From Tubulanus polymorphus (lineage: Eukaryota > Animalia > Nemertea), in contig NC_134030.1 of NCBI RefSeq assembly GCF_964204645.1, positions 1,037,355 to 1,101,354 of the forward strand: 64,000 nucleotides of DNA. Direction: 5' to 3'. Made by a program: the position numbers and the translations under genes. The notes beneath the pieces were generated by a model that was not told the origin of the DNA, did not search any database, and saw only the letters and a list, made by a program, of their open reading frames with translations. Within the stretch, counting starts at the first letter, position 1, and every line of letters starts with the position of its first letter. Of the stretch, positions 12,447 to 40,924 are shown piece after piece.

Positions 12447-12491
<45 letters not shown>

Positions 12492-13583: not shown

Positions 13584-13675
13584 GATGATTTTAAACGAAT
13601 CTGACTGTCCAATACGACGTCTGTGAAACGAATGATTCGATCAGCTGACCGCTGGTCACTGTTCAGTAGTGTTCG
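13584..13675 (-). other. Paralogue of non-coding exon 0 joined to the exon-2 acceptor sequence
   Basis: Shares GTCAGCTGATCGAATCATTCGTTTCACAGAC with 19861-19891, ends in a GTAAGT donor, and is preceded by GAATATGTTTTCTCTTTTATAG as at 24489-24510. Confidence 0.7.
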
Positions 13676-14309: not shown

Positions 14310-14500
14310 ATGGGTCGGTCTGTCTTGAGTTTGTTGGTTGTTGCAGCAGCTATGGGTCTGTCTTGAGTTTGTTGATTGTTGCAGCAGCTGGGTCAGTCTT
14401 GAGTTTGTTGGTTGTTTCAGCAGCTATGGGTCAGTCTTGAGTTTGTTGGTTGTTTCAGCAGCAGCAGCTATGGGTCAGTCTTGAGTTTGTTGGTTGTCTT
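14310..14500. repeat. ~38-bp imperfect tandem repeat, ~5 copies
   Basis: GTCTTGAGTTTGTTGGTTGTT(T/G)CAGCAGCTATGGGTC repeated. Confidence 0.85.
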
Positions 14501-14956
14501 GATTTTTTTCTATAGGAATTCAAGAACAAAGTAGTCGCATGTAGGTAGACACATTCATGAATCACTCAGTGTCTTCCTGTCCCACCATAACTTCCTTGAT
14601 CCTCATTACTCGGATTTATTCTCTGAACCACTTTTCCATGTTTGTTGTGGTTTGTTTGTTTTGATTTGCTGGTGGTTTAAGCATGCATGTAGAGGGAGCT
14701 CTATCAATCCAGGAACAGTCAGCTCACAAGCAGCCCCTGCCCCAAAAGGTTTTGACATATTTTCAAAAGCTCTTGTTCTGTAGAACCGAGAGCGGAGCTC
14801 TGACTTGTTCCCCTCACTGCTGAGGTCTACTTTCTCTGATTCGCTGATTGGCTTCTCTTTGGTACATATTGGATGATCAAAAACTAGAAACTGTCATGCG
14901 TTTATTCATTTTGGTATATGTTAAAATTCTTTTACAATAATGGCATATTAGGCACA

Positions 14957-15304
14957 TCAAAACAAATCCGGAATTGTCCCCGAACGAAGTGGCTCCCTCC
15001 ACTCTCCATCAGTATGCCGGGCCACCACCTCTACCTCTCGGGCCACTCGATCACTCGCCAGCTTTTTGGCGAGTGAACGAGTGACCGCCCGAGATACGGA
15101 TGGAGGAGCAGGACCCGCACCTGCCCCAGCCCCACCATCATCCCTCCTCGGCCTCTTCCTATTAATTCTTACCCCTTCCTCCTGATTGCCTTGATCAGCT
15201 GCGCCATCCGCAGGGGCAACTCTTGCCTCCCCTCCCTGAGGAGCCACGACGACCGCAACTTTTCTTTTTCGTTTGGTTCTTGTTTTTTTTGGCGGTGGTC
15301 GTGT
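14957..15304 (-). pseudogene. Orphan exon-8 paralogue, in frame from acceptor to stop
   Basis: TTTCTCTTTACAG|TRPPPKKTRTKRKRKVAVVVAPQGGEARV...WREPLRSGTIPDLF*; many synonymous differences from 39900-40292. Confidence 0.85.
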
Positions 15305-15632
15305 CTGTAAAGAGAAAAAATGAACAATAAGTATTTAGTATAATACACCTATGTGCGTATAATACACCTATGTGAGTCCTTCGCTATTAAACACATAGAA
15401 CTGTGGAACTGGATCCCGAGGCTAATCTAAATGCGCGCAACTGAGTCCAAGTGCAACTAAAGCACACAACTGCGGATCAGATAAATCATTGGTAGATTCA
15501 CTTGTAAAATATCTCGCTAAGAACAAACTAAAAACTGTAGAATGTTGTTGAAACTGTTGTGTGTTATTCATTTGGGTATATGTTATATTTGAATTTTTTT
15601 CAATGAAGGCATATTAGGCGCACATGAACGTC

Positions 15633-16030
15633 TCATGCGTTCAAGGCATATCCCTTCACTGAAAGAATATTCTTTAGATCAGTTAACAAATCCGGAATTG
15701 GCCCCGAACGAAGTGGCACCCTCCACTCTCCATCAGTATGCCGGGCCACCACCTCTACCTCTCGGGCCACTCGATCACTCGCCAGCTTTTTGACGAGTGA
15801 CCGCCCAAGATACGGATGGAGGAGCAGGAGGAGCAGGACCCGCACCATCTCAAGCCCCACCACCATCCCTCCTCGGCCGCTTCCTATTTATCCCCTCCCC
15901 TTCCTCCCGATTACCTTCGTCAGCCGCACCATCCGCCGGGACCACTCTTGCTCCTCCTCCCTGCGGAGCCACGACGACCGCAACTGGTACTTTTCGGTTT
16001 CTCTTGGTTTCCCACCATCTTTCAAAAGAG
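15633..16030 (-). pseudogene. Second exon-8 paralogue with altered 5' end and a frameshift
   Basis: Homologous to 39940-40330; deletion near VTRS. Confidence 0.8.
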
Positions 16031-20532: not shown

Positions 20533-22495
20533 ATCGCTGTTTTTGGGTAAGATCGCAGTTTTTAGGTAAGATCGCAGTTTTTAGGTTAGATCGCTGTTTT
20601 GAGGTTAGATCACCGTTTTTGGTTAGATTGCTGTTTTGTGTTAGATCACTTTTTGTGTTAGATCACAGTTTTTGTGTTAGATCGCTGTTTTTGGGTTAGA
20701 TCGCTGTTTTGTGTTAGATCGCTGTTTTAGGTTAGATCGCAGTTTTTAGGTTACATTGCAGTATTTTGGTTAGACCGCAGTTTTTTGTTAGATCGCAGTT
20801 TTTAAGTTAGATCGCTGTTTTGGGTTAGATCACAGTTTTTAAGTTAGATCGCTGTTTTGGGTTAGATCACAGTTTTTGTGTTAGATCGCTGTTTTAGGTT
20901 AGATCGCAGTTTTTAAGGTAGATCGCAGTTTTTGGGTTAGATCGCTGTTTTAGGTTAGATCGCAGTTTTTAAGTTAGATCGCTGTTTTGGGTTAGATCAC
21001 AGTTTTTGTGTTAGATCGCTGTTTTAGGTTAGATCGCAGTTTTTAAGTTAGATCGCTGTTTTGGGTTAGATCACAGTTTTTGTGTTAGATCGCTGTTTTA
21101 GGTTAGATCGCAGTTTTTAAGTTAGATCGCAGTTTTTGTGTTAGATCGCTGTTTTAGGTTAGATCGCTGTTTTTAAGTTAGATCGCTGTTTTGGGTTAGA
21201 TCACAGTTTTTGTGTTAGATCGCTGTTTTTAGGTTAGATCGCAGTTTTTAGGTTACATTGCAGTATTTGGGTTAGACCGCAGTTTTTTTGTTAGATCGCA
21301 GTTTTTAAGTTAGATCGCTGTTTTGGGTTAGATCACAGCTTTTGTGTTAGATCACAGTTTTTGGGTTAGACCACAGTTTTTTTGTTAGATCGCAGTTTTT
21401 AAGTTAGATCGCTGTTTTGGGTTAGATCACAGTTTTTGTGTTAGATCGCTGTTTTTAGGTTAGATCGCAGTTTTTAGGTTAGATCGCAGTTTTTGTGTTA
21501 GATCACTGGTTTTTTGTTAGATTGCAGTTTTTAGGTTAGATCGCTGTTTTGTGTTAGATCGCCGTTTTTAGGTTAGATTGCTGTTTTTAGGTTAGATCGC
21601 TGTTTTGTGTTAGATCGCTGTTTTTAGGTTATATCGCAGTTTTTGTGTTAGATCACTGTTTTTGTGTTAGATCACTGTTTTTGTGTTAGATCACAGTTTT
21701 TGGTTAGATCCCTGTTTTTAGGTTAGATTGCTGTTTTTAGGTTAGATCGCTGTTTTTAGGTTATATCGCAGTTTTTGTGTTCGATCACTGTTTTTGTGTT
21801 AGATCACAGTTTTTGTGTTAGATCACAGCTTTTAGGTTAGATAGCAGTTTTTAGGTTAGATTGCTGTTTTTAGGTTATATCACAGTTTTTGTGTTAGATC
21901 ACAGCTTTTAGGTTAGATAGCAGTTTTTAGGTTAGATTGCTGTTTTTAGGTTATATCGCAGTTTTTGTGTTAGATCACTGTTTTTGTGTTAGATAGCAGT
22001 TTTTAGGTTAGATCGCTGTTTTTGAGTTAAATCGCCTTTTTGGGTTAGATCACAGTTTTTGTGTTAGATCACAGCTTTTAGGTTAGATGGCTGTTTTTAG
22101 GTTAGATCCCTTTTTTCTCTTAGATCGCAGTATTTAGGTTAGATCTCTTTTTTTTTGGATTAGATCGCTGTTTTTGGGTTAGATCGCAGTTATTGTGTTA
22201 GATCGCAGTTTTTTGTTAGATCGCTGTTTTTGGGTTAGACCGCAGTGTTTAGGTTAGATTGCAGTTTTTAGGTTAGAACACTGTTTTTCTGTTAGATCGC
22301 AGTTTTTTGTTAGATCGCTGTTTTAGGTTGGATTGCTGTTTTAGGTTAGATCGCAGTTTTTTGTTAGGTCGCTGTTTTTGGGTTAGAAAGCTGTTTTTGT
22401 GTTAGATTGGTGTTTTTAGGTTAGATCGCTATTTTTGTGTAAGATCGCTGTTTTTGGGTTAGATCGCTGTTTTTGGGTTAGATCACTGTTTTTGT
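20533..22495 (+). repeat. 19-21-bp T-rich minisatellite, ~95 copies
   Basis: Unit approximately GGTTAGATCGC(A/T)GTTTTT(A/G). Confidence 0.95.
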
Positions 22496-22547
22496 GTTTT
22501 TGTCAATCATCATATCAAGATTTGCAATCCCAGTTGCCTTCAAGTTT

Positions 22548-23220
22548 CATATAGAGAATTAGTGGATGTGGTGTCCCTGGACCCCTACATGCACCATATA
22601 GAGAATTAGTGGATGTGGTGTCCCTGGACCCCTACATGCACCATATAGAGAATTAGTGGATGTCGTGTCCCTGGACCCCTACATGCACCATATAGAGAAT
22701 TAGTGGATGTGGTGTCCCTGGACCCCTACATGCATCATATAGAGAATTAGTGGATGTGGTGTCCCTGGACCCCTACATGTACCATATAGAGAATTAGTGG
22801 ATGTGGTGTTCCTGGACCCCTACATGCACCATATAGAGAATTAGTGGATGTGGTGTCCCTGGACCCCTACATGCACCATATAGAGAATTAGTGGATGTGG
22901 TGTCCCTGGACCCCTACATGTACCATATAGAGAATTAGTGGATGTGGTGTTCCTGGACCCCTACATGCACCATATAGAGAATTAGTGGATGTGGTGTCCC
23001 TGGACCCCTACATGCACCATATAGAGAATTAGTGGATGTGGTGTCCCTGGACCCCTACATGCACCATATAGAGAATTAGTGGATGTGGTGTCCCTGGACC
23101 CCTACATGCACCATATAGAGAATTAGTGGATGTGGTGTCCCTGGACCCCTACATGCACCATATAGAGAATTAGTGGATGTGGTGTCCCTGGACCCCTACA
23201 TGCACCATATAGAGAATTAG
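22548..23220 (-). repeat. 47-bp satellite, ~14 copies, ending ~70 bp upstream of exon 1
   Basis: Reverse complement of the 4292-5186 unit. Confidence 0.97.
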
Positions 23221-23289
23221 TTCACTGAACCAGAATAAGACCGACTGATATATTTTCAAATGATTTAATATTTTTACTTGTTTTTCTAG

Positions 23290-23352
23290 ATGCCAAAAGC
23301 CACAAAGAAAACCCGGGGCGCGGGGCCCTCAACATCTAGCCCCTATAATAAA
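23290..23352 (+). CDS. Exon 1: MPKATKKTRGAGPSTSSPYNK
   Basis: TTTTTCTAG|ATG ... AAA|GTAAGT, 63 nt. Confidence 0.88.
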
Positions 23353-26300
23353 GTAAGTACAAATTTACTGCTTCCATGCTTATTTATTCATACTTAGTAT
23401 TTTGTACCCCTGGGTCCAGTTTCACAAAAAGGATAAACGCCTTAATCGATTTAAGATAAACTGAATTAATGAAGAAATTAAATCGATTTAAGAGTTAAAC
23501 CTGTTTGTGAAACTAGGCCCTGAATTGCATCTAGAATGAAAAAAAAGAAAAAAAAATATTGAAAATAACGTTGGTGAAATATTTCTGGATCTTTCTGGAT
23601 TTCTGCTCAATGCATCGTTTAGTAAAATATCGATATTCTCTAAAAGTAAAGATATAAGAATAAAAATATTGTATTGAATCGTGATTAGTTACTGTATGCG
23701 CTGCTAGTTGTTGCCCAACCCATAGCCTCATTTCTCTCCATTCTAAATTTGCATTGTTTAACATTGTCTGGTCGCTATGGAAACTATTTATTTAAGTTTC
23801 TTTGTTGTATCCATGGCAACAGTAACGTTTAGGTAGTGGCACCAATTATGGGTCCCAACGTTCCCATGGCGATACATGAGAACATTTATCCTATTTTTGA
23901 CCTTCATGACGTAAGATGGTAGTGAGTCGATGACGTCATTTTCGTCTCACCACTAATGAAAAAAAAAATGAAATGAAAAAAAAGGAAAAAATCGTTAGAA
24001 TTACGTTTATGAAATTTTTCTGGATCGGCTAAATGTATTGTTCCATTAAATATCGACATTCTCTAAAATTATAGGCATCAATATCAAAATGATGATACAG
24101 CAGACTCCGCTTAACTCTGTTCTATTTGGACCATTAATTAACCGAATACCAACTTTTTAAAATTTTAGGATTTTAACTTTAAGGATCAGAAAATGTGTAT
24201 GCAATTTCAACCGGGTACCGAGTAGGGTGGCCGAGTCTACTGTAGTCTGCTGCCACCTCGAATCCATTACCTTATTATCTCTCAATTTGCATTGTTTGAC
24301 CTCGTCTGGTTGCTATGGAAACTATTTAGTTATATCAGGAACGGTTTTTTCGAGGTAACCAGTGGCAACATTTAACAGGCGTGTCCGTCCTAGAGATAAA
24401 CTGTCTGATTTCACAGCCACATCCGTCCTAGAGATAAACTGTTAGATAAACTCTGATTTCGCGTCTGTCCTATTTCTTGTCATTGTATGAATATGTTTTC
24501 TCTTTTATAGGGTACAGCGCAGCAACAACAACAACAACAACAACAACAGCAACAGCAACAACAACAACAAAAATTTAATATTTCTATGTCGGGAATAGAC
24601 GTAAGTTATCGTAAACGCCTGTTTGAAGTCATCATTCTTGAGCTTGAAACCGAAATTTATATTATAGAATATTAAACCCTGCTTCTGCTACTGACAGGTA
24701 ATGTCCGTCATACATTACTGCATCGTCAAATCTATACCAGGGTGCACCCAGGCAGATCGTTCGCATCATCACATGCAAAGGGCTGATTATTTTGGAACCC
24801 AGTTTTTATCAGCTGGAACATTCTGCACATTCGACCATATTGATTGATAGCCCGTTATAGACGAGTGGAGAAAAGCTGAAAAACCAGTTCGGAAAAACTT
24901 CGATTGATTTCACTCACATTTACAGAAATTTGGTCCGACCCCAAAACCATTTACTTACACTATACAAATCAGATCAGGTTTTTAACATTGTCCTTGATTG
25001 TATTTTCAGTTTTTGCCGACAACGCCACCGAGTGGTGTACCGCCTTCTACACCGGTAAGTGATAACTATTTTCTAATAAATCACGCTTATTTCAATCTGT
25101 AATTTGAAAATAGAGGGTAGTAGCTGTTATGTATAAATTATGCTAATTAGGAATAAATTCAAATTCGATTAAGTCTCATCATCGTAGAAGTCATATATTA
25201 ATGATGCTAAAGTTGTCATTTAAATTAAGTGTTATATTTACTACTTCATTTGCTTCATGACCCAAAAACCTCTACTATATAACTACTGGTTTTGTTCTAA
25301 TCTTGGAGAATTTGCTGCAAAATTTACTTATCATTTGTTAAACAGTTTTTATTGAAAACCTGAATCAGTGATACATGCATTCATGAATATCCATCTAATA
25401 TTTTGTTTTATTTTATCTTTACAGGATTTATCACCGATACAGCACGTGGACGTAAGAGATTAAACATTGATCTTGAATTTTAAGTTCAAACTAATTTATT
25501 TTTTATCTCACTCGGGACTATAGTTATTGCGTTCACTTTGCGTCCAGTTGTCTCGGCTAGTTTTTGATTTATCGTGTTGATAATTGGTTTATATACTCAA
25601 ACTCAAAATATCGGCGCAATTGGAATTAAGATGGCGCACTTGTATGTCCATTTTTTTCCCCGGCAAAATTAGCACTTTAGCAGATTTTAAGGATCAATTC
25701 TGTTGTTATATTACATTGAAATCAGAGTTTAATATATATCGGTATAGAGCAGGTTTTTGCTCTAGTTATAAATAAAGTTATAAATAATCTCATGACATGT
25801 TCTGTATATGTGTAGTGAGTTTCAATGTCTTTGGTTCCTTTTAAACCAGGGGGAGTTAAATTTGAAAATGTCAGATCGTCGAGCATTTCAGACCACTTCC
25901 AAAGTGGGTCCCTGCACCCCTAGTTATACCGTTAATATTTTAATAATATATTGATATACCATACATTGATATCAGTCTTGTAATTGGATCAACAACCATG
26001 AGATCAAAACACAGCAAATATGAACCTGCTGTGAATCAATAGATTTGTGATAAATGTAATGAAATTGTTATTTTTCATATTGACTTTTTGAGTTAAGGGT
26101 CTGTTGTATAAGAGTATTTGGTATCGCGTGTCAATGTATGATATCAATCTGTATTTCCTCGTTCCAATGTTTAAAAGGTGTTCGTCACCTTATATTAATA
26201 AACTACTTTTACCGTTAGATGGCGCCATAAGTGTGATATTTGATTTATGGGATACCCGCAAAACCAGCTATTCCACCAGATGGCGCAACGAGTAGTAGGT

Positions 26301-27571
26301 CGTTCGTTGTCAAAATTAGTTCATTTTCGATGAACTTTGAACTGGTTTGAAGAAGAAATACTTTCATTCTTCTACTCTGATATCGATTTAGTTTTCATTA
26401 ATAATTGATTCATTTAAGAGAACAATTCATTCAGATTTAATTGAAATGTACAAGAAAATCGAACGCAGACGACCAACTATTTACTAGCGACACCTGGTGG
26501 ATCCTCGCCTGCCATAAGTGGAATCCTCGATTGCCACAGTAAGACTGCGGGTATCCCATTGTTTGGCGTGTGAATTAAAGTAAAGTTAGAAAACGGATGT
26601 TTAACTTTGTTGTGAAACGAAAGCGTTTTGGAGATTTTTAAACCAATCAAATCAATATTTTGATATTACGCTTGAAACCCTTCCCACTCATATTCTACTT
26701 ACTAAGTATATATTCTTGTTTCCGTGGAAATCATGGTGAGTGGCGCCATCTATACAGTGGAGTTAGCTTTATAAATCGAGCATGATTCGACAAGTGGCTC
26801 CATCTATTCCCTAATACTGAAGCGAGGTAACCAGCAGCGCCCTCATATACAGGAAATGAACGCCTATCAAGTTTAACAATGCACGGTGTATTGACCACAG
26901 CGACCGGTGATAATTATATCAATGTTGATTAGCTATTGCCATAGACAGGTCCGTAGCGTTTGACTGGACCAGAACGGGGCCCCCTAACCAAAACAAATTT
27001 TGAAAACGTGCCCAGATAAATTGCCTCTGGGAGATTGATTTAACGAGGTTTTGATTAAATGAACAAATTTTAATATTTGTAAGTTTAACATTTCTGTTTT
27101 TAATTTTTCTTTGCGAGGAACTGAATTTTCGAACCCCCCCGAACCGCCTCAAGCTACGTTCCTGATATAGTGCTAGCTATACCTGAATACTTTTCTCTTA
27201 TTGAAATTGTCTAAAAAACCAGCACCTTGAACTAATGAACGTCATAATGAAAATGTTTAAAAATTCAACCATTAATGAATTTGACTAATGTATTTTTTTT
27301 ATTTTCATTTCTAGCATCAGTTTGCCTCAGAGGCAAGGTCGCCGTCGCTTAATGTAAGTATCAGTGACGCCCTCAATCTCACATGCCTCACTTCCCTCCT
27401 AATGTAACCATTTTTATGAAATTCCTCAAGAAAATATATACTAGTAATCTTAGAATACACGTTTTTGTACCCAGACCCCTTCATTCTACTGAACTACCGT
27501 GTAATAAGTGCCTGTTGTGTTCATTTTCTGTTGCATTGATTTATATATTATTTCTATTTACAGTTGTCAAA

Positions 27572-27612
<41 letters not shown>

Positions 27613-30600
27613 CACCCCTCCCGCCGGAGACGCCTCCCGACTTGCAAGCAAGAAGTAAGTTCAGTCTTCAAATACAATTTCAATGCATTCAATTTTGTGT
27701 ATGGCATTAAAACGGTTAAAGTTGTGACTAGTTTTCATAACTCCGTGACGTCATATTTCCATCGAGTACCGGACCCTTTCCTATGTTTTTTGCCAATTTG
27801 GATTGAATGATCGCCAGCGGTTTTTCTATACGACCCGGCTCTGCTGTATTGCATTTAGCCATCCTTTTTCTTGGCGTTTTTTATAAGAAGGTGTTTGATT
27901 TTGTCTCTAAGGGATTTAGGAATTTAAGAGACACTTGTACTTTCTATGCAGTGAGTTTGTTCTGTTTTTGTTCCCTCGTGAATTTTATTTTTGTTTGGTT
28001 TAATTTGATTTATCATAATCAAATCAAATCAGTGCATATTTCTTGAATTGCGTGTAAGTTATAATGTTATCAAATATCTGTTATATTTAAACCGAATATT
28101 TAATTGTTGTATTTTGAATGCGATAATGCCGCTCCCTGCTAAAGTCCAGCGTCATCATCGTGAGGGATGCGGTCATCTGTTCGGGCCCTGATTACGTTCT
28201 GTGTTCATCCTGTTGGGCTACATCGGGCGTTATATGAGTTCATCCTTCCTCGACTTGCGGATTGTGGTCGGAAGATCTATGGGTTCGGGCCGATAAGTCC
28301 CGGAAACAGAAAGTACAGTTTCTGCCGATGTGCCTATTGATGTCTCTATTTCAGAACATCACAGCGGTCGCCGGCTGTACAAGCACGGTCGGCTTCCCAA
28401 CTCCATTCTCTGAGGAGGATCGCTGGTTCTCTAGTAACGGTCAGTCACCAGTCAATCAACGGTTCAGCTGGTTCAGTTTCCCAGGTATCGGCGCGCGACA
28501 GTCGGGATACCTGCACAGGAACTCAGGTCCGGTCCGGGCTACTCCGAGCACCGGTCCGGTCCAGGCATCACCGGATACTGAACATCCTGTCCGGTAGCTT
28601 CGAGAACTGGTCCGGTCCAGGCATCACAGGGTACTGAACATCTGGTCTAGTCAGCTTCGAGAACCGGTCCAGGCATCACCGGATACTGAACATCTGGTCC
28701 GGTCAGCTTCGAGAACTGGTCCGGTCCAGGCATCACCGGGTAATAAACATCCGGTGCACGGGTACTGAACATCTGGTCCGGGAGCTTCGAGAGTCCGGTC
28801 CGGTCCAGGCATCACTGGGTACTGAACATCCAGTCTGGTCCAGTCCAGGCATCACCGGGTACTGAACATCCAGTCCGGTCTGGTCCAGGCATCACCGGAT
28901 ACTGAACATCTGGTCCGGTAGCTTCGACAACTGGTCCGGTCCAGGCATCACCGGGTACTGAACATCCAGTCCGGTCCGGTCTAGGCATCACCGGGTACTG
29001 AACATCCAGTCTGGTCCGGTCCAGGCATCAGTGGATACTGAACATCTGGTCCGGTAGCTTCGAGAACTGGTCCGGTCCAGGCATCACTGGGTACTGAACA
29101 TCCAGTCCGGTCCGGTCCAGGCATCACTGGGTACTGAACATCCAATCCGGTCCGGTCCAGGCATCACCGGGTACTGAACATCCAGTCTGGTCCGGTCCAG
29201 GCATCAGTGGATACTGAACATCCTGTCCGGTCAGCTCCGTGCACCGGTCCGGTCCAGGCATCACTGGGTACTGAACATCCAGTCTGGTCCAGTCCAGGCA
29301 TCACCGGGTACTGAACAGGGTTCGTCGCGGTGCTTGAAAAGCTTGAAATGGCTTGAATTTGAAAAATACTACTCAAGCGCTTGAAAACAGCTTGAAAATA
29401 GATCGAAAGCTTGAAATAATTATTTTTGACTTGAAATAAAAAGATATGGCTTGAAATGCTTGATTATCACAAATTTTCTTCATCGCGAATTTTTTTCGAT
29501 GAAATCGCAGACAGAATATGTTCTTGAGTTGTTTCTACGCGTGCGTCATGTTTTAGGCATCAATAAAGAAATTAATTGAATTGTATTGAATCGCTATGAG
29601 ACTCTTGTGGTGAAACTCTACGGTGTCTGGAGACATGAACATACGGGGAAATTTCAGTCATGCATGTTATCGAGCATTGATGTAAAATGGCATTGAAATC
29701 CCACACCAGGAGTGAGAGCCATGTTGAAGGCACCGCGACCTAGTCAAAGTCATTGAACATTACAAATTTCGTATTAGGCCATCCAAAAATCAAGGTCTGT
29801 TTGCCGTCATCCGACCGACCCGACTTCAAAGGTACCCAGTGGAAACTTTTTTCTTGGATTCATTGAAATAAATTGTATTTTTGATACAAATGGCCGACCC
29901 ACTGCCGATGTATGAGCTATGTATGTTTGAAGTTAAGTGTGCATCATGTGAAAACATGCCTCGACTATTTAGTTGAAGTTTTCCAGGAAACTGGCAGTGT
30001 TCCAATAAGCTGCCATTCATTCTAAAGCTGGTAATGTTATAGCGTGCATATATTCAATCTACTGTTTCATTTTGAACGCAGATTTCGGATGTTGTTTCCG
30101 CTAAAAGTGGTGATGATAAATTTGTTGTTTTTTTGCCCCAAAATTTTGCAAAAAAAAAATGATGCTACCTTCCTACTGACTTATCCCAAAAATAGTAGGT
30201 GTAACGGCAAAACAGACAATTAATTTGGGATGGCCAAATATCCAAATCTTGATTGATATGAATATTTAAGCTAGGAAATGCTGAAAATCATTGTGATGAA
30301 CAGGTTTCATCTCTAACAGAATCGTATCAACTCGGAGGTTCCACTGGAATCAAAATTTTACCTCTTTTTTAACATTTTTATACGAACCTGTTCAAAATAG
30401 GCAAATTGGCTGCGACTAACGAAAATTGCTTCCAACGTGCCATAAAAAATAGCTTGAAAATGGTATAAATCTAGCTTGAAATGGATTGAATTTCACCTGA
30501 GCTTGAGACAATGAACCCTGCTGAACATCTGGTCCGGTCAGCTTCCAGCACTGGTCCGGTCCAGGCATCACCGGTTACTGAACATCCGGTCCGGTCAGCT

Positions 30601-33600
30601 TCCAGCACCGGTCCAGGCATCACCAGGTACTGAACATCTGGTCTGGTCCGGGCGGCCTGGCATCAATGTTTCGAATTTAAAACATAGTTATCATGGTTCT
30701 AGGTTTGGTAGAGGGCGCTCTTCTACCAGATGCAGGAGCGAGGTCACCTTCACGGAGATCGAGATCGAGGGATTATGATTGATTCTGTAGGAACCATCAT
30801 CATTCATCAGTTCAGGTCGAGGGACCGTTTAGGAAGTTCACGTCTTTCACGTCGAGGGACCGTTTAGGAAGTTCACGTCTTTCACGTCGAGGGACCGTTT
30901 AGGAAGTTCACGTCTTTGACATCGAGGGACCGTTTAGGAAGTTCACGTCTTTGACGTCGAGGGACCGTTTAGGAAGTTCACGTCTTTGACGTCGAGGGAC
31001 CGTTTAGGAAGTTCACGTCTTTCACGTCGAGGGACCGTTTAGGAAGTTTACGTCTTTCACGTCGAGGGACCGTTAAGGAAGTCGTCACAATAATCAGGAT
31101 TTCCGCGATTTCGAAAGTCAGATTTTAAACTTGTTATTGTCATTGTAAGCTACCGCAGTTACAGGTAAGCCTATTTTTGATTGCCCGAGACAGGCGTGCA
31201 GATATTGTTCCCGACTTAAGTTTTTGGTTGATTTTCTTGTGACTTGTTTGTTTTAGGGGTGAGATGGATGAGCCTTATTGTTTTTTGACATATATAGGTC
31301 ATCCAAGATGGCCGCCACAGCCATTACAATGTGTAAAATAGCCATTTTGAAGCTTGTGACAACTCTACAATCTACAGTTTCAAACCAATTTGCCAATTAC
31401 TTATTCTGTGGTTTCATAATGGTAGGAGAATGAGCCTTATTGTTTTTGACGTATATAGGTCATCCAAGATGGCCGCCACAGCCATTTCAATGTGTGAAAT
31501 AGCCATTTTGAAGCTTGTGACAACTCTACAATCTACAGTTTCAGACCAATTTACCAATTACTTATTCTGTGGTTTCATAATGGTAAGAGGATGAGCCTTA
31601 TTGTTTTTGACATATATAGGTCATCCAAGATGGCCGCCACAGCCATTTCAATGTGTGAAATAGCCATTTTGAAGCTTGTGACAACTCTACAATCTACAGT
31701 TTCAGACCAATTTACCAATTACTTATTCTGTGGTTTCATAATGGTAAGAGGATGAGCCTTATTGTTTTTGACATATATAGGTCATCCAAGATGGCCGCCA
31801 CAGCCATTTCAATGTGTGAAATAGCCATTTTGAAGCTTGTTACCGCTCTACGGACTTAAGTTTTAAGCTTAAGACTTAAGATGGCCACCACAGTTATATC
31901 AATGTGTTAAATCTTATCCGATTTGGAGCTTGTTACTGCTCTAAGATGTAGAGGTTTAGAGGTTTATAATTTCATTCATACTTGTACTGTGGTTTATTTA
32001 TGGTGGTCAGAGGATGAGCCCTATTACAATTTGCATTCTCTACTTGACTCACTGGTCAAGGGTTAATATCTAGTTTGATAAATGTGGAGCATGTCGGTGA
32101 ATCACCCCCCCCCCCCCCCGGACTCTGATCTCAATGTCTGATGTCAATCGTCAGCAGTTTCAATGGAATGGGCTCGATTAGGTGTGGAACAAGTGGAATC
32201 CTCGATTGCCACAGTCGAACCTAGAGTATTAAGAGCTCAATTAGGTTGTTCTTTGCGTCTCTTCTCCGGTTGGAGTGCTCCAGTTTCCACCAAATGGAGG
32301 AAGATTAGAGATGTGCAGATTCAAGTCCACCATGCGGACTCCGGCTCCGGCAGCTCAAGGTTCAGCTCCGGCTCCGGCAGCTCAAGGTTCAGCTCCGGCT
32401 CCGGCAGCTCAAGGTTCAGCCCGAACTCACACAATGCCATCTCAAGCATCTACTAATGCTGGTTGGAGAACAAGTGCACAGCTCCAACATTCTCGTGCCC
32501 CTTCTGGTCAGAATAATTCTAGTTCATATCGGGGAATGCTCCTAAAAGGAGCTCTTCCTCTCGGAGAAACTCAAAATGAATGCTCGGGGCCAGTGAGAGG
32601 TTGTCTATAACGAGCAGCCACCTACTGATCCGGCGTTCCCGGGTCGTATCACGGCGGCTACTGTCTTCAATTCTGAACACCTCCCGACATGCGCCCGAAA
32701 GCAGGTCACGAGACACTAATCTCGTCAGCTCTCAAAGATCTGGCCAAAAAGAGAGCAATAGAACCAGTACGGGACGAAGCCACATCCGGCTGGTTTTCAT
32801 GAATATTTATGCTCCTGAAGACCACAGGGCGTCGATGGACTGTCATTCCTCGAGCGGCACCTGGATATCCCGAGGCTTCCGATGACTAAAACAGGGAGGT
32901 AATTCAAGGTCTCCGCCGAGGTTAATGGGCGGCTTCATTGGACCTGAAAGATGTCAGGTTCCTATTCACCCGAAATCTCATCAATTTCACAGAATGAAGT
33001 GGAAACGCCGCCAGTTCCAGTTCAGGTCTCTTCCAGTCGGCCTCAGTACAGCCCACGCCCTGGGTATTTACCAGCTTGGGTCAAGTCCAGAAGGTACACT
33101 ACACTCCAGGGCTGGGTTTCATAGATATGGAAGAAAAATAATTCCAGGGAACATTTTGAAATTTGTCAGTTATAACCATGGTTTCTCATTGTTAGTATGG
33201 TGGTTGAGGATTTATCCCTTTGGATAACTTTGATACTCAGTCTATGAAACCGGGTCCTGGAGTATTTGTCTGTTGGTTTACCTCGACGACTGGTTACTAG
33301 TACCAAACTCGACTATAGAATGTCAGGAGGCGGTGACCGCTGTCGACCGCTGTCGTAGACTTAGTTCACCAGTTCCGCGTAAACTAAGTAAAATCTCACT
33401 TGATGCCGTCCCAACAGTTCACATCTCCGGATCAGCACGGTCTTTCCGTCCATGGCTCGAGTAGCCAAACTTCAAGAAGCGTAGTTACCACAAACGAGAG
33501 GACAGCTAGTTATCGGTGACGCCTGTGGCTAAATGCAATACCGCAGTGCCAGGGGTCGTATCTCTGGCTATCTACACATTCAGAGAATATTAACTAAAAC

Positions 33601-36600
33601 CATAGGAAAGGGTCAAGCACTACTCCGAAAAAAAACTAATTTTATTTCCAAAAAATTATGATATTATATGGATTGCATGCTGTGTGGAAGAAGTTTTCAA
33701 AATTATTTAGGAGCTTATTATAATTTGAATGCATGAATTGAGAGCAATTTGAAATGTGTTGATATCCGAAAGTGTCTCCATTGACTTCACTCATTCACCT
33801 GATGAAGCTTCTATACATTAGTACCCAAAGCTTGTGTGTCAAATAAACTAGTTACACGTCCTATAAAGTACTACTTGTCTCGTTATATATTCTAAACCCC
33901 AGTTAACAATTCCAGTAAGTCAGGTTTAGGGAATAGATATTTAAACCTTGAGATGATACCGATGTAATACAATTCCAGTAAGTCAGGTTTAGGGAATAGA
34001 TATCTAAACCTTGAGATGATACCGATGTGATACAATTCCAGTAAGTCAGGTTTAGGGAATAGATATTTAAACCTTGAGATGATACCGATGTGATACAATT
34101 CCAGTAAGTCAAGTTTAGGGAATAGATATTTAAACCTTGAGATGAAACCGATGTGATACAATTCCAGTAAGTCAGGTTTAGGGAATAGATATTTAAACCT
34201 TGAGATGATACCGATGTGATACAATTCCAGTAAGTCAGGTTTAGGGAATAGATATTTAAACCTTGAGATGATACCGATGTGATACAATTCCAGTAAGTCA
34301 GGTTTAGGGAATAGATATTTAAACCTTGAGATGATACCGATGTGATACAATTCCAGTAAGTCAGGTTTAGGGAATAGATATTTAAACCTTGAGATGATAC
34401 CGATGTGATACAATTCCAGTAAGTCAGGTTTAGGGAATAGATATTTAAACCTTGAGATGATACCGATGTGATACAATTCCAGTAAGTCAGGTTTAGGGAA
34501 TAGATATTTAAACCTTGAGATGATACCGATGTGATACAATTCCAGTAAGTCAGGTTTAGGGAATAGATATTTAAACCTTGAGATGATACCGATGTAATAC
34601 AATTCCAGTAAGTCAGGTTTAGGGAATAGATATTTAAACCTTGAGATGAAACCGATGTGATACAATTCCAGTAAGTCAGGTTTAGGGAATAGATATTTAA
34701 ACCTTGAGATGATACCGATGTGATACAATTCCAGTAAGTCAGGTTTAGGGAATAGATATTTAAACCTTGAGATGATACCGATGTAATACAATTCCAGTAA
34801 GTCAGGTTTAGGGAATAGATATTTAAACCTTCAGATGATACCGATGTGATACAATCCCAGTAAGTCAGGTTTAGGGAATAGATATTTAAACCTTCAGATG
34901 ATACCGATGTAATACGATTCCAGTAAGTCAGGTTTAGGGAATAGATATTTAAACCTTGAGATGAAACCGATGTGATACAATTCCAGTAAGTCAGGTTTAG
35001 GGAATAGATATTTAAACCTTCAGATGATACCGATGTGATACAATTCCAGTAAGTCAGGTTTAGGGAATAGATATTTAAACCTTCAGATGAAACCGATGTG
35101 ATACAATTCCAGTAAGTCAAGTTTAGGGAATAGATATTTAAACCTTCAGATGAAACCGATGTGATACAATCCCAGTAAGTCAGGTTTAGGGAATAGATAT
35201 TTAAACCTTGAGATGAAACCGATGTAATACAATTCCAGTAAGTCAGGTTTAGGGAATAGATATTTAAACCTTGAGATGAAACCGATGTGATACAATTCCA
35301 GTAAGTCAGGTTTAGGGAATAGATATTTAAACCTTCAGATGATACCGATGTAATACAATTCCAGTAAGTCAGGTTTAGGGAATAGATATTTAAACCTTGA
35401 GATGAAACCGATGTGATACAATCCCAGTAAGTCTGGTTTAGGGAATAGATATTTAAACCTTTAGATGATACCGATGTGATACAATTCCAGTAAGTCAGGT
35501 TTAGGGAATAGATATTTAAACCTTGAGATGATACCGATGTAATATAATTCCAGTAAGTCAGGTTTAGGGAATAGATATTTAAACCTTGAGATGAAACCGA
35601 TGTGATACAATCCCAGTAAGTCAGGTTTAGGGAATAGATATTTAAACCTCGAGATGAAACCGATGTGATACAATTCCAGTAAGTCAGGTTTAGGGAATAG
35701 ATATTTAAACCTTCAGATGATACCGATGTTATACAATTCCAGTAAGTCAGGTTTAGGGAATAGATATTTAAACCTTTAGATGAAACCGATGTGATACAAT
35801 TCCAGTAAGTCAGGTTTAGGGAATAGATATTTAAACCTTGAGATGAAACCGATGTGATACAATTCCAGTAAGTCAGGTTTAGGGAATAGATATTTAAACC
35901 TTTAGATGAAACCGATGTGATACAATTCCAGTAAGTCAGGTTTAGGGAATAGATATTTAAACCTTTAGATGAAACCGATGTGATACAATTCCAGTAAGTC
36001 AGGTTTAGGGAATAGATATTTAAACCTTTAGATGATACCGATGTGATACAATTCCAGTAAGTCAGGTTTAGGGAATAGATATTTAAACCTTGAGATGATA
36101 CCGATGTAATATAATTCCAGTAAGTCAGGTTTAGGGAATAGATATTTAAACCTTCAGATGAAACCGATGTAATACAATTCCAGTAAGTCAGGTTTAGGGA
36201 ATAGATATTTAAACCTTCAGATGATACCGATGAATTTAGCAATTTTGAATGAATCAAACCAATATGAGATTTCGATCCTAAGAATATTGGAAGCTTGTGT
36301 TTAACGTTACTAAATATTAATATTATATAAAGCTAGAAGGACACGAGCGTATCCATTTTTCGCCCGATCGCGACGATTAAATTCGCCGGTGAATTTATAC
36401 GCCCGATACGAGCGGGTACCGATCTATCTATAAATCGGCCGTCACGGTGATTTCGTCGCCCGCCGACATTAAACATGTTCGATATTTATGCCGGTGTTCG
36501 GGTCACTTGTTAATTCGCTCGGCTTGTCGGCAAGCTTAAAAAGATTTAGAAAAAACTAGAAATTCTCATTCGTGAATGAACTGGATTCATCTGGGTTCAG

Positions 36601-39600
36601 TTTCATGAGACACAGTTCAAACTGCTCTTGAATTTGAGTTTGTAATTAATGTATGTGATTATAATGAATTGTATTTTTGTTTTACAGCTTTGGCATTTCG
36701 GTTAAGTCGTGCGTTCCGGCGGGAGGAGTTCGTCAGAATATTTCTACCGGAGTGTAAGTAGTTTAACTATTTTCATACAATATCATTTAGTGTGACGTGT
36801 GTTACTGATTCAGGCACGGATCCAGGAATGTTTCCAAGACGGGGTTCATAAAAATGCTGACTAAAATCTCTAATAATAGCCGGGGCCTATACGGCATATT
36901 TTTTGGCCAAACATAAGGCCTTTTTTTAATAGCATGGTTTGGTTGCTCCCAAAATTTGAAGAAACATAAAATAAAAAAGAATTAGAAAAAAAATTTTTTA
37001 TTCCTGTCTGTGAAACAAATTCAGTGAAAAACCGAGCAAAAAAGATTTTTCACCTCGGCCGAATGAGAATCCTGGATTGAACGATGAAACAATTGAAAAA
37101 CGCGAGGTTCTTTTTTGATCGCAGTGTGCAGAATTCAAACTTTCCAAGAATCATTTGTTCGGACATATGTATATTGCCCTATTGACAGTTCCCTCTTCCT
37201 TCTAAAAGTGATTTTATCTCACTGAGGGAATTTTTAAAAAATTTTCTCTGAAATGATATGGTAGCGTTTCTTTTTTTGCTTTAAAAATTTTTTGGTAGCC
37301 GATCAGCGGGGTCACGACCCCTGAAACCCTCCCTGGATCCGCGCCTATGATATCTCCTCAAAATCTAATAAAAACTTTCAATGAATTAATGCTGTAATGA
37401 CGATATGTAGCCATCTGTCTATTTGAATGCATTTGCAAAAAGACAAAAAGAAATAGTAGCAGAATTTTGGCTAAAAGTTTAGAATACCCAAATTCAACAT
37501 TGCTTGCAGCAGACGGAATTTCCGCCATTTTGGTTAACAGGGGATTCCCCCCTCCGGTACTTCCCATGATCAATAGTGTCTATGACGCGTTGCGTACGGA
37601 ATGCCATGGAATTCCCTCACATGATTTATGATAATAATGTTTACTTGCATTCTGATTGGTTAAAATCGCGTGTAGTTTGAACGTAGGCAATGTTTACATT
37701 TGTAACGTCACCGGCGAGTCGCTGACATTAACGTAGTCATTGAGTTAACATTATCTTGCACTGAATGGTGATATCAATCGCATTCATTTTATAAATTTTT
37801 TGAATATGAATTTGTTTTTATATATCAACTGCGAGTAACAGTGTTACGCTATTGAGTCTTAAGAGACAGCCTTTATGGACCTTATTGGTTGTTATAACTC
37901 ACAAGCTGACTGAGTTAGCATTCTGGATCCGTCAGATTAGTTACTTCTAGAAAATATGTTAGTCACATTTTCGGACTATATTCTGGAAAACAGTGGAAGC
38001 TTGTATCCACCCTAGATTAGAACCAATCAGAATAGAACCAATCAGAATACACTATTTTACAGAAAATATATTTATGACAATTGCGTAAGGTTTTAGTAAA
38101 ATAGTGTTTTTTCTCGAGTAGTTGCCGAAGAAGCATAAAAATTTGATTCAATTTCATTCAGATTTAAACAAACAAATCGAATTTCATTTCATTCAGCGCA
38201 AACTTCAAATCTAATTAAAATTTTGTTCAGTATGAATAAGTTGCAAATCATTGAGAGGAAAAAATAATTAATTGTGTTACTTAAAAAAATCACAATTGTA
38301 CTGTGTTTATCAAAACAGGAGACCACAGGACCTTTGGTCCTCTAGTATTCTTTTCCTAGTTATTCCAAAAACACTAAAACAGTCCAATCAGCGATCGCTG
38401 CCAGACCAACACGATTACATTGAAATCAAACTTAAGTAACATCAGGCGCCCCCTGTTGGAATAATATTCATAGCCGTAGCATCGAAACCATTCGACTTGT
38501 TGTTTAATGTATTTCTCTCTATTTTTATTTTACAGTGATGAACATTTTACAAGACTGTCCGTTTGGGGACTTGGTGGGGGAATTCAAAAGAAACTTGGTT
38601 CCCGATAGGATACCACCACCGGTTAATCCTATGTCGCCCGCTGCTGCCCCTCCCCCACGTCCATTAAATTCGCCTCAGCAGCGGCCTGTCAGACAGCCGC
38701 CCCCGGCCGCCACTCGTTCGTCAGACAGAGTCCGGGGACGGCTGTTTGAAGGAGATCTGACGGAGGTAAGAATCTTTATTTGTTTTTAAATTTTATTCAG
38801 GATATCAGTTGAAGTTCAGCAAATAAATTACCAGACCTGTAAACAGAAGAGTAGTCATAAATTTCCATTTGCGGGTAAAACCCCATAGTCGAAAACCTTC
38901 GGTTATTGATCTATATCTGCTTAAGACCAATGGTTGTACACACGAGTGCGAAAACTTATCGCTCAAACTTTGATTGTATCCATGGTAACGCGTACAGTAT
39001 ACTATGCGTGACTTACCGTTTCCTATCACTGGAATACAATACTGTTTTTGACCATGAGCGCCATCTGCGGCGGTCATAACGGACTGACTGGTGATTGGCT
39101 GAAATGCTCGTCTACCGTGGTGACGATTATTCGGTGTTACACGTGCAGCAGACACGTCTCTGAATATCTAACATTTGATTGTTGTAACTCATCGGGAAAA
39201 ATATGTTTATGAGTCGATTTTTTGTCGAAATTTTGTTCGGCAGAAAATTGGCTGCGTACGTCAAGAAGGCGGCTGATATTTGTATCGTGTGACCCCTCGT
39301 CCCGGTAATATGCCGACCCACGTACACCTGAGACCAGTTGCATAGTCAGAGCTTAGAATTAAGACCGTTTTAAGACCAACTTAGTTCTATAGCCAATCTA
39401 ATAACTTAAGACCAGTCTTTAGATTTAAGACCACTTTTGGACTTAAGTCTTGACCATGGAATCGGCCCCAGATGCTTATTCCGCTGTATTGGATGCTGAC
39501 GTGCTCGTGTCTTCCAGCAATGTTGTTATTCACCAAAAATATCATGTTTTGTTCGAATAACACAATTCATCTGAGTCTGGGTTTAACGGATGACACGTTC

Positions 39601-40292
39601 AAACAGAACTACGAAATCAATATCAGAAGTCCTTTTATATTGAAACGGTCCCAGAAGTCCCTGTTATAATGGGTACTTTTTCAAAAAAAGTAACGAGAAC
39701 TCCGATGGCTTTCCGTATCGGTAAAAACTAACTATTTCTATGAGCGTCACTCGTAGATTTACCGAAACGCCACCTTGTGACACGATATCCTAACTACGTA
39801 TAGGTGTTTTATTTGCTGAATCGCTGGTTTCTCATTCTCATTTTTTATACTTGTGTTTAATTTTATACTAAACAAATTTTTCACTTTTTCTCTTTACAGA
39901 CACGACCACCGCCAAAAAAAACTAGAACAAAAAGGAAAAGAAAAGTTGCGGTCGTCGTGGCTCCGCAGGGAGGAGGAGCAAGAGTGGTCCCGGCGGATGG
40001 TGCGGCTGACGAAGGTAATCGGGAGGAAGGGGAGGGGATAAATAGGAAGCGGCCGAGGAGGGATGGTGGTGGGGCTGGGGATGGTGCGGGTCCTGCTCCT
40101 CCTGCTCCTCCATCCGTATCTCGGGCGGTCACTCGTTCACTCGCCAAAAAGCTGGCGAGTGAACGAGTGGCCCGAGAGGTAGAGGTGGTGGCCCGACATA
40201 CGGATGGAATGTGGGAGGAGCGGCTTCGTTCGGGGACAATTCCGGATTTGTTAACTGATTTAAAAAATATTCTTTCAGTGAAGGGATATTAG
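23290..40292 (+). CDS. Unrecognised 8-exon gene, 334 aa, disordered basic probably nuclear protein: join(23290..23352, 24511..24600, 25010..25054, 25425..25451, 27564..27654, 36688..36753, 38536..38765, 39900..40292)
   Basis: Each exon has a pyrimidine tract plus YAG acceptor and each intron starts GTAAG(T/A). Intron phases 0,0,0,0,1,1,0 join to 1005 nt from ATG to TAG with no internal stop. Paralogous exons differ mostly at third codon positions. Confidence 0.82.
23413..23519. mobile_element. MITE, PIF/Harbinger-like (second copy at 56856-56962)
   Basis: ~40-bp imperfect terminal inverted repeats (GGTCCAGTTTCACAAAAAGG... / ...CCTGTTTGTGAAACTAGGCC), flanked by CTG on both sides (CWG-type 3-bp TSD). 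Confidence 0.75.
24511..24600 (+). CDS. Exon 2: GTA-Q17-KFNISMSGID
   Basis: TTTTCTCTTTTATAG| ... GAC|GTAAGT, 90 nt. Confidence 0.88.
25010..25054 (+). CDS. Exon 3: FLPTTPPSGVPPSTP
   Basis: ATTTTCAG| ... CCG|GTAAGT, 45 nt. Confidence 0.88.
25425..25451 (+). CDS. Exon 4 (27-nt micro-exon): DLSPIQHVD
   Basis: TTTATCTTTACAG| ... GAC|GTAAGA. Confidence 0.78.
26210..26850. promoter_or_regulatory. Cluster of CTCF-like motifs in intron 4
   Basis: CCACCAGATGGCGC at 26273-26286 (+), CCACCAGGTGTCGC at 26487-26500 (-), and further AGATGGCGC half-matches near 26217 and 26745. Confidence 0.4.
27564..27654 (+). CDS. Exon 5: LSNN-S12-APLPPETPPDLQAR
   Basis: TTCTATTTACAG| ... AGA A|GTAAGT, 91 nt, phase 0 to 1. 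Confidence 0.85.
29316..30520. mobile_element. Non-autonomous DNA transposon (hAT-like termini, 5-bp TSD)
   Basis: Termini CAGGGTTC and GAACCCTG, CTGAA duplicated at 29311-29315 and 30521-30525, subterminal GCTTGAAA repeats at both ends. Confidence 0.85.
29777..30235. mobile_element. Nested non-autonomous TIR element (superfamily uncertain, possibly Zator-like)
   Basis: GGCCATCCAAAAAT..GTCTGTTTGCCGT at the left end versus ACGGCAAAACAGAC..ATTTGGGATGGCC at the right end; TTA on the left flank. Confidence 0.7.
30816..31082. repeat. 35-bp tandem repeat, ~7.5 copies
   Basis: GTCGAGGGACCGTTTAGGAAGTTCACGTCTTT(C/G)AC; period 35. Confidence 0.95.
31230..32030. repeat. 161-bp tandem repeat (~4.5 copies), possibly the internal array of a Helitron/Helentron-type non-autonomous element (~31140-32110)
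   Basis: GAGCCTTATTG restarts at 31270, 31432, 31593 and 31754; each unit contains CAAGATGGCCGCC. The element class is an inference. Confidence 0.8.
33907..36232. repeat. 63-bp satellite, ~37 copies
   Basis: CAATTCCAGTAAGTCAGGTTTAGGGAATAG... with period 63; it produces the spurious 784-aa and 299-aa ORFs. Confidence 0.97.
36688..36753 (+). CDS. Exon 6: (T)LAFRLSRAFRREEFVRIFLPE(L)
   Basis: TTTTTGTTTTACAG| ... GAG T|GTAAGT, 66 nt, phase 1 to 1. It is a GC-richer island in AT-rich flanks and single copy in this window. Confidence 0.72.
36811..37347. mobile_element. Non-autonomous TIR element in intron 6
   Basis: AGGCACGGATCCAGG ... CCTGGATCCGCGCCT, a 15-bp inverted repeat with 1 mismatch; no clear TSD. 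Confidence 0.65.
38536..38765 (+). CDS. Exon 7: MNILQDCPFGDLVGEFKRNLVPDRIPPP...VRGRLFEGDLTE
   Basis: TTTTATTTTACAG| ... GAG|GTAAGA, 230 nt, phase 1 to 0. Confidence 0.88.
39331..39468. mobile_element. Degenerate MITE in intron 7
   Basis: AGACCAGTTGCATAGTC.. versus ..GACCATGGAATCGGCCC imperfect inverted repeats, CTG/CAG flanks, internal TTAAGACC repeats. Confidence 0.5.
39900..40292 (+). CDS. Exon 8 (terminal): TRPPPKKTRTKRKRKV...NRKRPRR...RAVTRSLAKK...WEERLRSGTIPDLLTDLKNILSVKGY*
   Basis: TTTTTCTCTTTACAG acceptor, 393 nt open to TAG; same frame as supplied ORF 39957-40292. Confidence 0.88.
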   Translation, partial: TRPPPKKTRTKRKRKVAVVVAPQGGGARVVPADGAADEGNREEGEGINRKRPRRDGGGAGDGAGPAPPAPPSVSRAVTRSLAKKLASERVAREVEVVARHTDGMWEERLRSGTIPDLLTDLKNILSVKGY

Positions 40293-40924
40293 GTGCCTTG
40301 AACGCATGAGTCGTTCATGCGCGCCTAATATTCCTTCACTGAAAAAAAATCAACTATAACATGTACCACATATTTTTTGATTTAATTTTAGTCCAATTCC
40401 ACAATTATTTCGGCTTACAATAGTGTCTTCAATTCTTTAAAGCCCAAAGCACCTTTTTGACTCAACATCCAGTATGAAGGTGGCCGGGAATCGGGCCTGT
40501 TTTCTTCCATTTTTGTATCCCGCCCAGCATACTGGTTGTTGACTCGAAAAGGTGCTCGCTCTGGGAGCTTATCAAAGGCAGGTGATGGGAAAGGTGCCAT
40601 CACACACTCTCCTTTGATAAGTTTCCTAGAGTGTCACGGGCTTTAACGGGTTGAATTCACTATAATACCAATTTTCCAAAATCAATTTAATTTCTTTCAG
40701 GCCATTCTTTTTCCATGTTTTTCTGGTACATGTTATGGTTGATTTCCATTTTCGAAAATCCGGAATTGAAGCCGTTCGAAGTCGGGGGGATGGTGGTGGG
40801 GTTGGGTTAGTTTAGGGTTCCTCTCTGATTACCTTCTTTAGCTCATCATCCGTGCAGGTGGCGCTTGCTCTTCTAGCCGGTGTTCCCTGGGGTAAACATT
40901 TTAAATTTAAAAAATCAAAAATAA

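Follow-up and report, generated by a model that had tools for sequence, protein, structure and literature searches.

Major histocompatibility complex (MHC) loci are homogenised while their coding diversity is maintained. D4Z4-DUX4, TSPY, CT47 and GAGE are macrosatellite or ampliconic gene arrays, and GAGE, PAGE and SPANX are families of the disordered, cancer-testis type. In the red and green opsin genes, which are under gene conversion, divergence peaks in exon 5 and is low in the flanking introns (PMC3924837). Here we describe a gene family of the nemertean Tubulanus polymorphus that shares features with each of these systems. It was found in a stretch of 64,000 nucleotides (nt) of contig NC_134030.1 (C6:1037355-1101354, hereafter the window; assembly of 268 Mb in 77 contigs), where an eight-exon gene of about 17 kb lies at 23290-40292. 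What is new here is that the divergence between copies of this gene is packed into short coding patches, in exons 1-4 and at the end of exon 6 together with the start of exon 7. We consider it probable that this is the unit gene of a lineage-restricted multi-copy protein family which evolves in concert and whose divergence peaks are selected.

The eight-exon gene and its arrays

A preliminary description of the locus, made from the letters of the sequence, had proposed eight exons of 63, 90, 45, 27, 91, 66, 230 and 393 nt with strong splice sites and matching phases. All eight are found at exactly those positions on the forward strand, every quoted peptide is recovered there and the spliced peptide reads as had been written, with two split codons that encode T and L. 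All seven donors are GTAAG and the internal acceptors consist of a pyrimidine tract followed by AG. Exons 1-4 and 7 each end in phase 0 and exons 5 and 6 in phase 1, and the exon lengths total 1005 nt, or 334 codons and a stop. Only exon 8 (111 amino acids, aa) and exon 7 (84 aa) appear in the list of open reading frames (ORFs), which misses the gene as had been said.

23290-23352, forward strand: exon 1, 63 nt, phase 0-0, with the ATG start and a basic peptide; the most variable patch among copies
24511-24600, forward strand: exon 2, 90 nt, with a poly-Q run (CAA/CAG); 84-102 nt in other copies, all in frame
25010-25054, forward strand: exon 3, 45 nt, rich in Pro, Thr and Ser; 39-48 nt in other copies
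25425-25451, forward strand: exon 4, a micro-exon of 27 nt
27564-27654, forward strand: exon 5, 91 nt, with a poly-Ser run (AGC) and phase 1 at its end; 61-91 nt among copies, always 1 mod 3
36688-36753, forward strand: exon 6, 66 nt, phase 1-1, with a variable patch in about the last 20 nt
38536-38765, forward strand: exon 7, 230 nt, phase 1 to 0; its first 50 nt or so form a variable patch, and the remainder is a Pro-rich coil
39900-40292, forward strand: exon 8, 393 nt including the stop; aa 1-72 predicted disordered

A TATA-like GATATATTTT stands about 40 nt upstream of the ATG of exon 1, and a conserved pyrimidine tract with AG precedes the ATG by 0 or 3 nt in every copy of exon 1, including that of the window gene (23262-23289).

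Searched as protein, exon 8 gave 113 matches in the genome, of which 34 are full-length and free of stops; 19 of these 34 are identical in protein to the window copy. They form groups on three contigs (C6, C3 and C8), all at most 1.8 Mb from a contig end:

C6, 1.077-1.752 Mb, forward orientation: 17 exon-8 copies, spaced by 30-36 kb or about double
C6, 0.65 Mb, inverted: 1 exon-8 copy
C3, 0.42-1.33 Mb: 10 exon-8 copies, spaced by 31-46 kb or about 70 kb
C8 (contig of 16.68 Mb), 15.14-16.31 Mb: 6 more diverged exon-8 copies (87-99%), dispersed

The amplification proposed in the preliminary description is thus borne out, but it is not local as had been thought, since the family is genome-wide with three arrays near contig ends. 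About 30 full-length copies of exon 7 with an open frame reach an identity of 93% or more and pair with the exon-8 copies; a few others are more diverged. For exon 1 taken with its 100-nt flanks there are about 33 full copies, together with hundreds of matches in satellites. The repeat unit measures 30-45 kb and holds one gene copy, with about 34 units in total; the window gene is the first forward-strand copy of the C6 array, and it is followed by a further unit whose exons 6-8 lie past the window end:

56728-56790, 57955-58056, 58466-58504, 58881-58907 and 61049-61130, forward strand: exons 1-5 of the next tandem unit

Besides several partial or more diverged copies, we read five more complete ones, of which C6 and C3 contribute two each and C8 one. 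All six complete copies are intact, with eight exons in the same order and AG/GT boundaries, and all length differences preserve the frame (exon 2, 84-102 nt; exon 3, 39-48 nt; exon 5, 61-91 nt; exon 7, 230 or 233 nt; exon 8, 387 or 393 nt). These changes are partly slippage of triplet repeats, and about five lie outside repeats. A diverged C8 paralogue also keeps the AG/GT sites and has frame-preserving length changes. The introns of the units are 98.5-99.7% identical within C6 and 91.6-99.5% identical between arrays, and the overall divergence between units is 1.05-1.36% over about 17 kb.

The family is without relatives, but it falls within a known class, that of the macrosatellite-type amplified gene families. 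As in the macrosatellite and ampliconic arrays named above, large units stand head-to-tail with one gene each, the copies number in the tens, the units share very high identity and coding capacity is intact, with open frames. D4Z4 lies near a chromosome end and the arrays described here lie near contig ends; TTAGGG arrays are present in the genome, among the matches listed. The family differs from these macrosatellites in its larger unit (30-45 kb), in its eight exons spread over 17 kb with satellite-filled introns, in a protein without known domain and in copies that differ in defined coding patches.

A subfamily of distant paralogues, in which only exons 7 and 8 are recognisable, is 45% identical to the family in the last 69 residues and about 50% identical in exon 7, and has the exon 7/8 split and the kind of donor in common with it. 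Its members lie in dispersed repeats of more than 8 kb, about 95% alike, at 10 or more places on C11, C9 and C8, and several of them have an inverted exon-7-like fragment 7-9 kb off. Four of these loci are:

C11:2080878-2089075, distant paralogue
C9:1577253-1585450, distant paralogue
C11:2948655-2956852, distant paralogue
C8:13957557-13965757, distant paralogue

Such dispersed repeats, the presence of gene copies on three contigs and a reverse-transcriptase-like stretch in intron 5 could be taken to mean that the gene is the cargo of a large mobile element or an integrated virus that spread to three chromosomes. However, the part of the unit that was sampled contains no transposase, integrase or capsid ORF and has no Pfam match, and head-to-tail arrays near contig ends point to exchange between chromosome-end regions instead. 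The reverse-transcriptase-like stretch (32163-33464, forward strand; short ORFs including a YLDDWLLV motif) is, judged by its sequence, a decayed retroelement insertion common to all units; neither its ORFs nor the exon of a distant paralogue gave a match in Pfam. We regard an origin as mobile cargo as extremely unlikely.

Over the whole coding sequence, the ratio of non-synonymous to synonymous substitution rates (dN/dS, Nei-Gojobori) is 0.12-0.32 among the complete copies (synonymous versus non-synonymous counts, P = 1e-5 to 7e-11, Fisher's test). Paralogous exons therefore differ mainly at synonymous sites, as the preliminary description had noted, and the ratio near 1 that it had named as telling against a gene is absent. 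Compared with the older C8 paralogues, exon 8 has a dS of 0.16-0.26 and a dN/dS of 0.07-0.26, and in its last 65 codons (66-130) dN is 0-0.007 against a dS of 0.12-0.145. In exons 6-8 together, third positions differ by 4.1% versus 4.0% for introns, and second positions by 0.4%, a pattern that looks like ordinary purifying selection. From the coding evidence we conclude that the locus is a genuine gene with several coding exons and that purifying selection acts on it.

The same figures bear on whether the locus might be a non-functional repeat, that is, a young macrosatellite with relic exons whose frames are open through recency. Its copies would then hardly show a dN/dS well below 1 when dS in exon 8 has already reached 0.16-0.26, nor 7 synonymous against 0 non-synonymous changes in the last 65 codons of the most diverged C8 copy. 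The substitutions follow a period of three, all length changes are in frame even outside triplet repeats, and the exon 7/8 split is kept both in the diverged C8 copies and in the 45%-identical distant paralogues. What such a repeat would account for is the very high identity between units, the many broken copies close by, the lack of any homologue in the Pfam, protein and ESM Atlas searches and a candidate RNA run without a contig on exons 6-8 (see below). We consider it very unlikely.

Divergence patches between copies

Among all pairs of the six complete copies, third-position differences in exons 1, 2, 3 and 4 amount to 37.8%, 25.3%, 24.4% and 20.0%, respectively. Where the alignment is free of indels, the 200-nt flanks show a difference of 1-2%; indels inflate the flank figures upstream of exon 4 and around exon 3. 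Comparison of the window copy with the unit that follows it gives 18 differing nt of 210 in exons 1-4 and 37 of 4090 in introns 1-4 (P = 3.5e-11). When about 17 kb were aligned with the two nearest units, exons 1 and 3 stood out as the clearest clusters of substitutions, satellites aside; one further small intronic cluster (27092-27152) showed no sign of being a hidden exon. The period-3 pattern of the substitutions led us to reject assembly error as the cause of the patches, and CpG decay or deaminase-type mutation was rejected for the many transversions at non-CpG third positions.

The second patch is evident in comparison with the C8 copy near 15.60 Mb. There, 7 differences fall in about the last 20 nt of exon 6 and 17 in about the first 50 nt of exon 7 (proportions of differing synonymous and non-synonymous sites, pS 0.67 and pN 0.16), followed by zero substitutions and one one-codon insertion in codons 21-76. 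For codons 1-20 of exon 7, pN is 0.16-0.32. The intron flanks beside this patch show 1-5 differences per 80-100 nt. The two half-patches, which encode the segment around a short helix, are contiguous in the mRNA and 1.1-1.8 kb apart in the DNA. One C3 copy has the exon-6 half without the exon-7 half, and in the C8 copy near 15.60 Mb the exon-7 patch has variants in common with older C8 paralogues. In these alignments the patches do not simply coincide with exons, as the exon 6/7 patch ends inside exon 7.

Exon 1 is a mosaic of variants, with 26 of its 63 sites varying among 11 copies (15 of them third positions); of 91 pairs of sites, 7 fail the four-gamete test. In the 21-residue peptide that it encodes, residue 5 (23302-23304) takes six states (T, N, I, Q, V, M) in the 11 copies; residues 15 and 20-21 vary too, and the rest is conserved. 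Besides that of the gene, the window contains further copies of this exon:

4163-4219, 7606-7662, 10286-10342, 12503-12559, 13909-13965 and 56728-56784: other exon-1 copies

In this respect the family resembles opsin exon 5 and the MHC, where copies that are otherwise concerted also combine low intron divergence with high divergence in short coding segments that contain amino-acid differences. It differs from the opsins in having several patches per gene, about 34 copies rather than two, and an exon 1 that is mostly synonymous in its changes. The favoured explanation is of the same kind: gene conversion or unequal exchange would homogenise the units, and selection would hold old variant segments apart, so that a few short segments resist homogenisation. 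The patch variants would then be old (pS up to 0.6-0.9), with the synonymous differences as hitch-hikers between selected residues.

Alternatively, conversion could have been templated by spliced RNA or cDNA of older, diverged paralogues, in which case only exon sequence would be exchanged and introns left untouched. Patch edges that adjoin splice sites, half-patches that meet in the mRNA while the flanks between them in the DNA are nearly unchanged, the variants shared with older C8 paralogues and the mosaic of exon 1 would all fit such a template. A cDNA tract spanning a junction, however, ought to delete the intron, and all introns are kept; the C3 copy with only the exon-6 half of the patch is not what it would leave, and for homologous repair 27-90 nt is a very short tract length. 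No new mechanism is needed if selection acts together with long-term recombination, which yields the same picture, and we find an RNA or cDNA template very unlikely. The synonymous excess in exon 1 and the sharp edges at splice sites nevertheless leave room for two mRNA-based readings, namely this exchange templated by spliced transcripts and an escape from small RNAs, which is considered below. That the patches diverge through one or the other process reading spliced mRNA is, taking both together, unlikely.

Opposite-strand copies and satellites

The other large feature of the window is made of partial copies of the same gene in opposite orientation:

649-16030, reverse strand: block of gene copies that are compacted, have shortened introns and are mostly broken

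It holds copies of exons 1-5, 7 and 8 and parts of introns, including tandem units of 2.68 kb with exons 1-4 and 7, and two exon-8 copies with stops. At array positions with doubled spacing the gap is filled by such reverse-strand partial copies, and by their spacing the blocks return once in about 2-4 units of the C6 array. Three of the 2.68-kb archive units stand in tandem with identical flanks. In one of them exon 7 (5359-5628, reverse strand) is of the gene type, with 2 mismatches, within archive-type flanks; its sisters (8050-8305 and 10730-10985, both reverse strand) have in common an 11%-diverged, frame-broken exon 7 with a 14-nt deletion. From its sequence, the exon 7 at 5359-5628 looks like an exon-sized conversion patch.

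These blocks raise the possibility of a genetic-conflict amplicon, in which a selfish or conflict factor was amplified, the antisense blocks give rise to small RNAs that silence the gene, the patches escape them and the archives are updated with current exons. Stellate and Su(Ste) are a driver/suppressor system of a comparable kind. In the Dox superfamily of the Drosophila simulans clade, the suppressors are hairpin RNAs and 359-bp repeats flank the genes (10.1101/2021.08.05.454923). Inverted copies near the gene, as in driver/suppressor systems, are present here in the block at 649-16030. The family is like Dox in being a basic protein gene with recent massive amplification, satellite-flanked, with inverted or antisense partial copies; it differs in lacking protamine or HMG-box similarity and in having its inverted copies within the array and not at separate autosomal loci. 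This likeness may serve as a lead only.

A conflict would agree with the inverted partial copies that recur beside the gene along the C6 array, with an archive exon 7 that matches the current gene while its sisters are diverged and broken, with divergence confined to the sequence of the mature mRNA and mostly synonymous in exon 1, and with satellites that flank the copies as the 359-bp repeats do around Dox-family genes (10.1101/2021.08.05.454923). The basic protein and the inverted exon-7-like fragments near distant paralogues would fit as well. On the other hand, no excess divergence is seen in exons 5 and 8 or in most of exon 7, although the archives contain them too, and a dN/dS below 1 with an invariant C-terminal module would suit an ordinary host function equally. 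We judge a conflict amplicon to be unlikely.

The satellites and the large intron referred to above are located as follows:

20533-22498: 19-bp satellite, about 105 copies, upstream of the gene; again upstream of the next unit at 54565-55651
22548-23221: 14 copies of a 47-bp satellite, with 68 nt between its end and the ATG
27655-36687, forward strand: intron 5, 9 kb, filled with satellites and holding the decayed reverse-transcriptase-like stretch
28528-29317: satellite of intron 5, a 40-176-bp family (GGTCCGGTCCAGGCATCACC...)
33906-36232: satellite of intron 5, 63-bp, 37 copies; satellites of 35 bp and 161 bp are also present in this intron

The 47-bp satellite precedes most full exon-1 copies of the window, on either strand. 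Large satellites are also listed at 62062-63323, and the long ORFs listed over 33906-36232, 28528-29317 and 62062-63323 are repeat artefacts. In intron 7, contigs of a DNA run reach a depth of about 2e5 at 39240-39533, against about 1e3 around, with many loose ends; this segment is a very abundant short interspersed repeat. Scans of the window with Rfam and for tRNAs found no RNA family and no tRNA, and an array of RNA genes with incidental exons was rejected for this reason.

The predicted protein and the favoured explanation

Searches and folding were done exon by exon, and composition was summed from per-exon counts. The 334 residues comprise 13% Pro, 10% Arg, 10% Ser and 7% Gln (Lys plus Arg, 14.7%), with a net charge of about +17 and an isoelectric point of about 11. 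The N-terminus is hydrophilic and basic, and a signal peptide is therefore absent. A sperm nuclear basic or protamine-like protein was considered and rejected, with Lys plus Arg at 14.7% of 334 aa and no H1, HMG-box or protamine domain by Pfam. Three features of exon 8 matter here:

39915-39944, forward strand: basic cluster KKTRTKRKRK, of the classical monopartite nuclear localisation signal type
40044-40061, forward strand: basic cluster RKRPRR, the second cluster in exon 8
40122-40283, forward strand: C-terminal helical region of about 55 aa, with four predicted helices

We take both clusters to fit the classical (SV40-like) nuclear localisation consensus. In the AlphaFold model of exon 8 (10 family sequences), residues 1-72 have a predicted local distance difference test score (pLDDT) below 50 and four helices at 75-128 have a pLDDT of 55-74; in that of exon 7, one helix is placed at aa 10-20 and the remainder is coil. 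Confidence is low in either model (mean pLDDT 53.5 and 63.9). They agree with a mostly disordered protein, as had been proposed at the outset, and also with a short helix in the exon 6-7 region, at aa 10-20 of exon 7. The main structured part, however, is the group of four helices at the C-terminus, and the exon 6-7 helix is not the best-conserved part, its region being one of the variable patches. The last 55 residues or so are invariant at the protein level in 34 of 34 copies and 45% identical in the distant paralogues. In these models and alignments, they are the best-conserved and most structured part and are strongly constrained.

Pfam searches gave only sub-threshold hits and no domain in any exon, the hits to LisH_WDR26 (PF23627; 12.0 bits, gathering cut-off 27) and DUF6508 (PF20118; 14.1 bits, cut-off 23.6) being rejected as below their cut-offs. 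A length-limited word-index search with exon 8 among proteins of 72-227 aa found no relative, and exon 8 had no usable match in the ESM Atlas. A profile of the C-terminal 69 aa, built from the main family and the distant paralogues, gave 0 matches among 1.84 billion representatives, and sequence searches of the PDB with the C-terminal profile and with exon 7 gave 0 matches. The only relatives found are the distant paralogues of the same genome, which agrees with the lineage restriction suggested in the preliminary description. Like GAGE, PAGE and SPANX, these are lineage-restricted, intrinsically disordered, multi-copy tandem genes; they have no sequence similarity to those families, and the protein here is larger and basic, with a conserved helical C-terminus.

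Under concerted evolution with selected divergence peaks, the product would be a basic, largely disordered nuclear protein. Its constant C-terminal helical module would probably dock it to a partner, possibly on chromatin, and the Q-, S- and P-rich N-terminal half and the short helix would vary between copies. The family would thus combine one constant function, many variant flavours and a high dosage. Germline or embryo expression is the usual case for such arrays, and expression here is probably restricted to a stage or tissue.

Several points weigh against this explanation or parts of it. The differences in exon 1 are predominantly synonymous, so that selection on amino-acid variants suffices only if the synonymous differences are old hitch-hikers, and the patch edges lie very near splice sites, sharper than simple linkage predicts. 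Six complete units of about 30 were compared. The docking of the C-terminal module is inferred, and so is the nuclear location, which we draw from the two basic clusters and the absence of a signal peptide. In the one candidate RNA run of the organism (guessed to be RNA; contigs of 38 million letters in all), no contig falls on 36300-40700, which covers exons 6-8; in the run search across the locus, the other three runs found are DNA-like. Exon 1 has an acceptor in front of it and might also be joined to a leader farther upstream, or the cassettes might form chains. A canonical AATAAA is missing near the stop codon, and for this reason a structure at the end of the gene is of interest:

40273-40346, forward strand: near-perfect hairpin of about 33 bp, with the TAG stop codon within its stem

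The hairpin (RNAfold, -47.5 kcal/mol, z -10.6) is almost unaltered in 10 of 10 copies examined, including C8 paralogues with an exon-8 dS of about 0.2, and may mark a site of processing, the 3' end of the mRNA or the joint of an old inversion. This arrangement recurs at about 1382-1512.

The locus holds a protein family without relatives that was overlooked by ORF-based annotation, although it covers more than 1 Mb of a small genome of 268 Mb. Its arrays constitute an unusually clean natural experiment, in which introns and intergenic DNA are homogenised to about 1% and a few coding patches of 20-90 nt remain up to 38% different at third positions. The pattern of patches marks the parts of the protein, with variation in the N-terminal peptide and the short helix and constancy in the C-terminal helices. 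If the antisense exon blocks make small RNAs, this would be a conflict system beyond the usual model organisms, and if escape from such RNAs explains the patches, an arms race would be waged partly at synonymous sites. If a process reading spliced mRNA proves true, the family would be a natural case of evolution limited to mRNA coordinates in an animal gene family.

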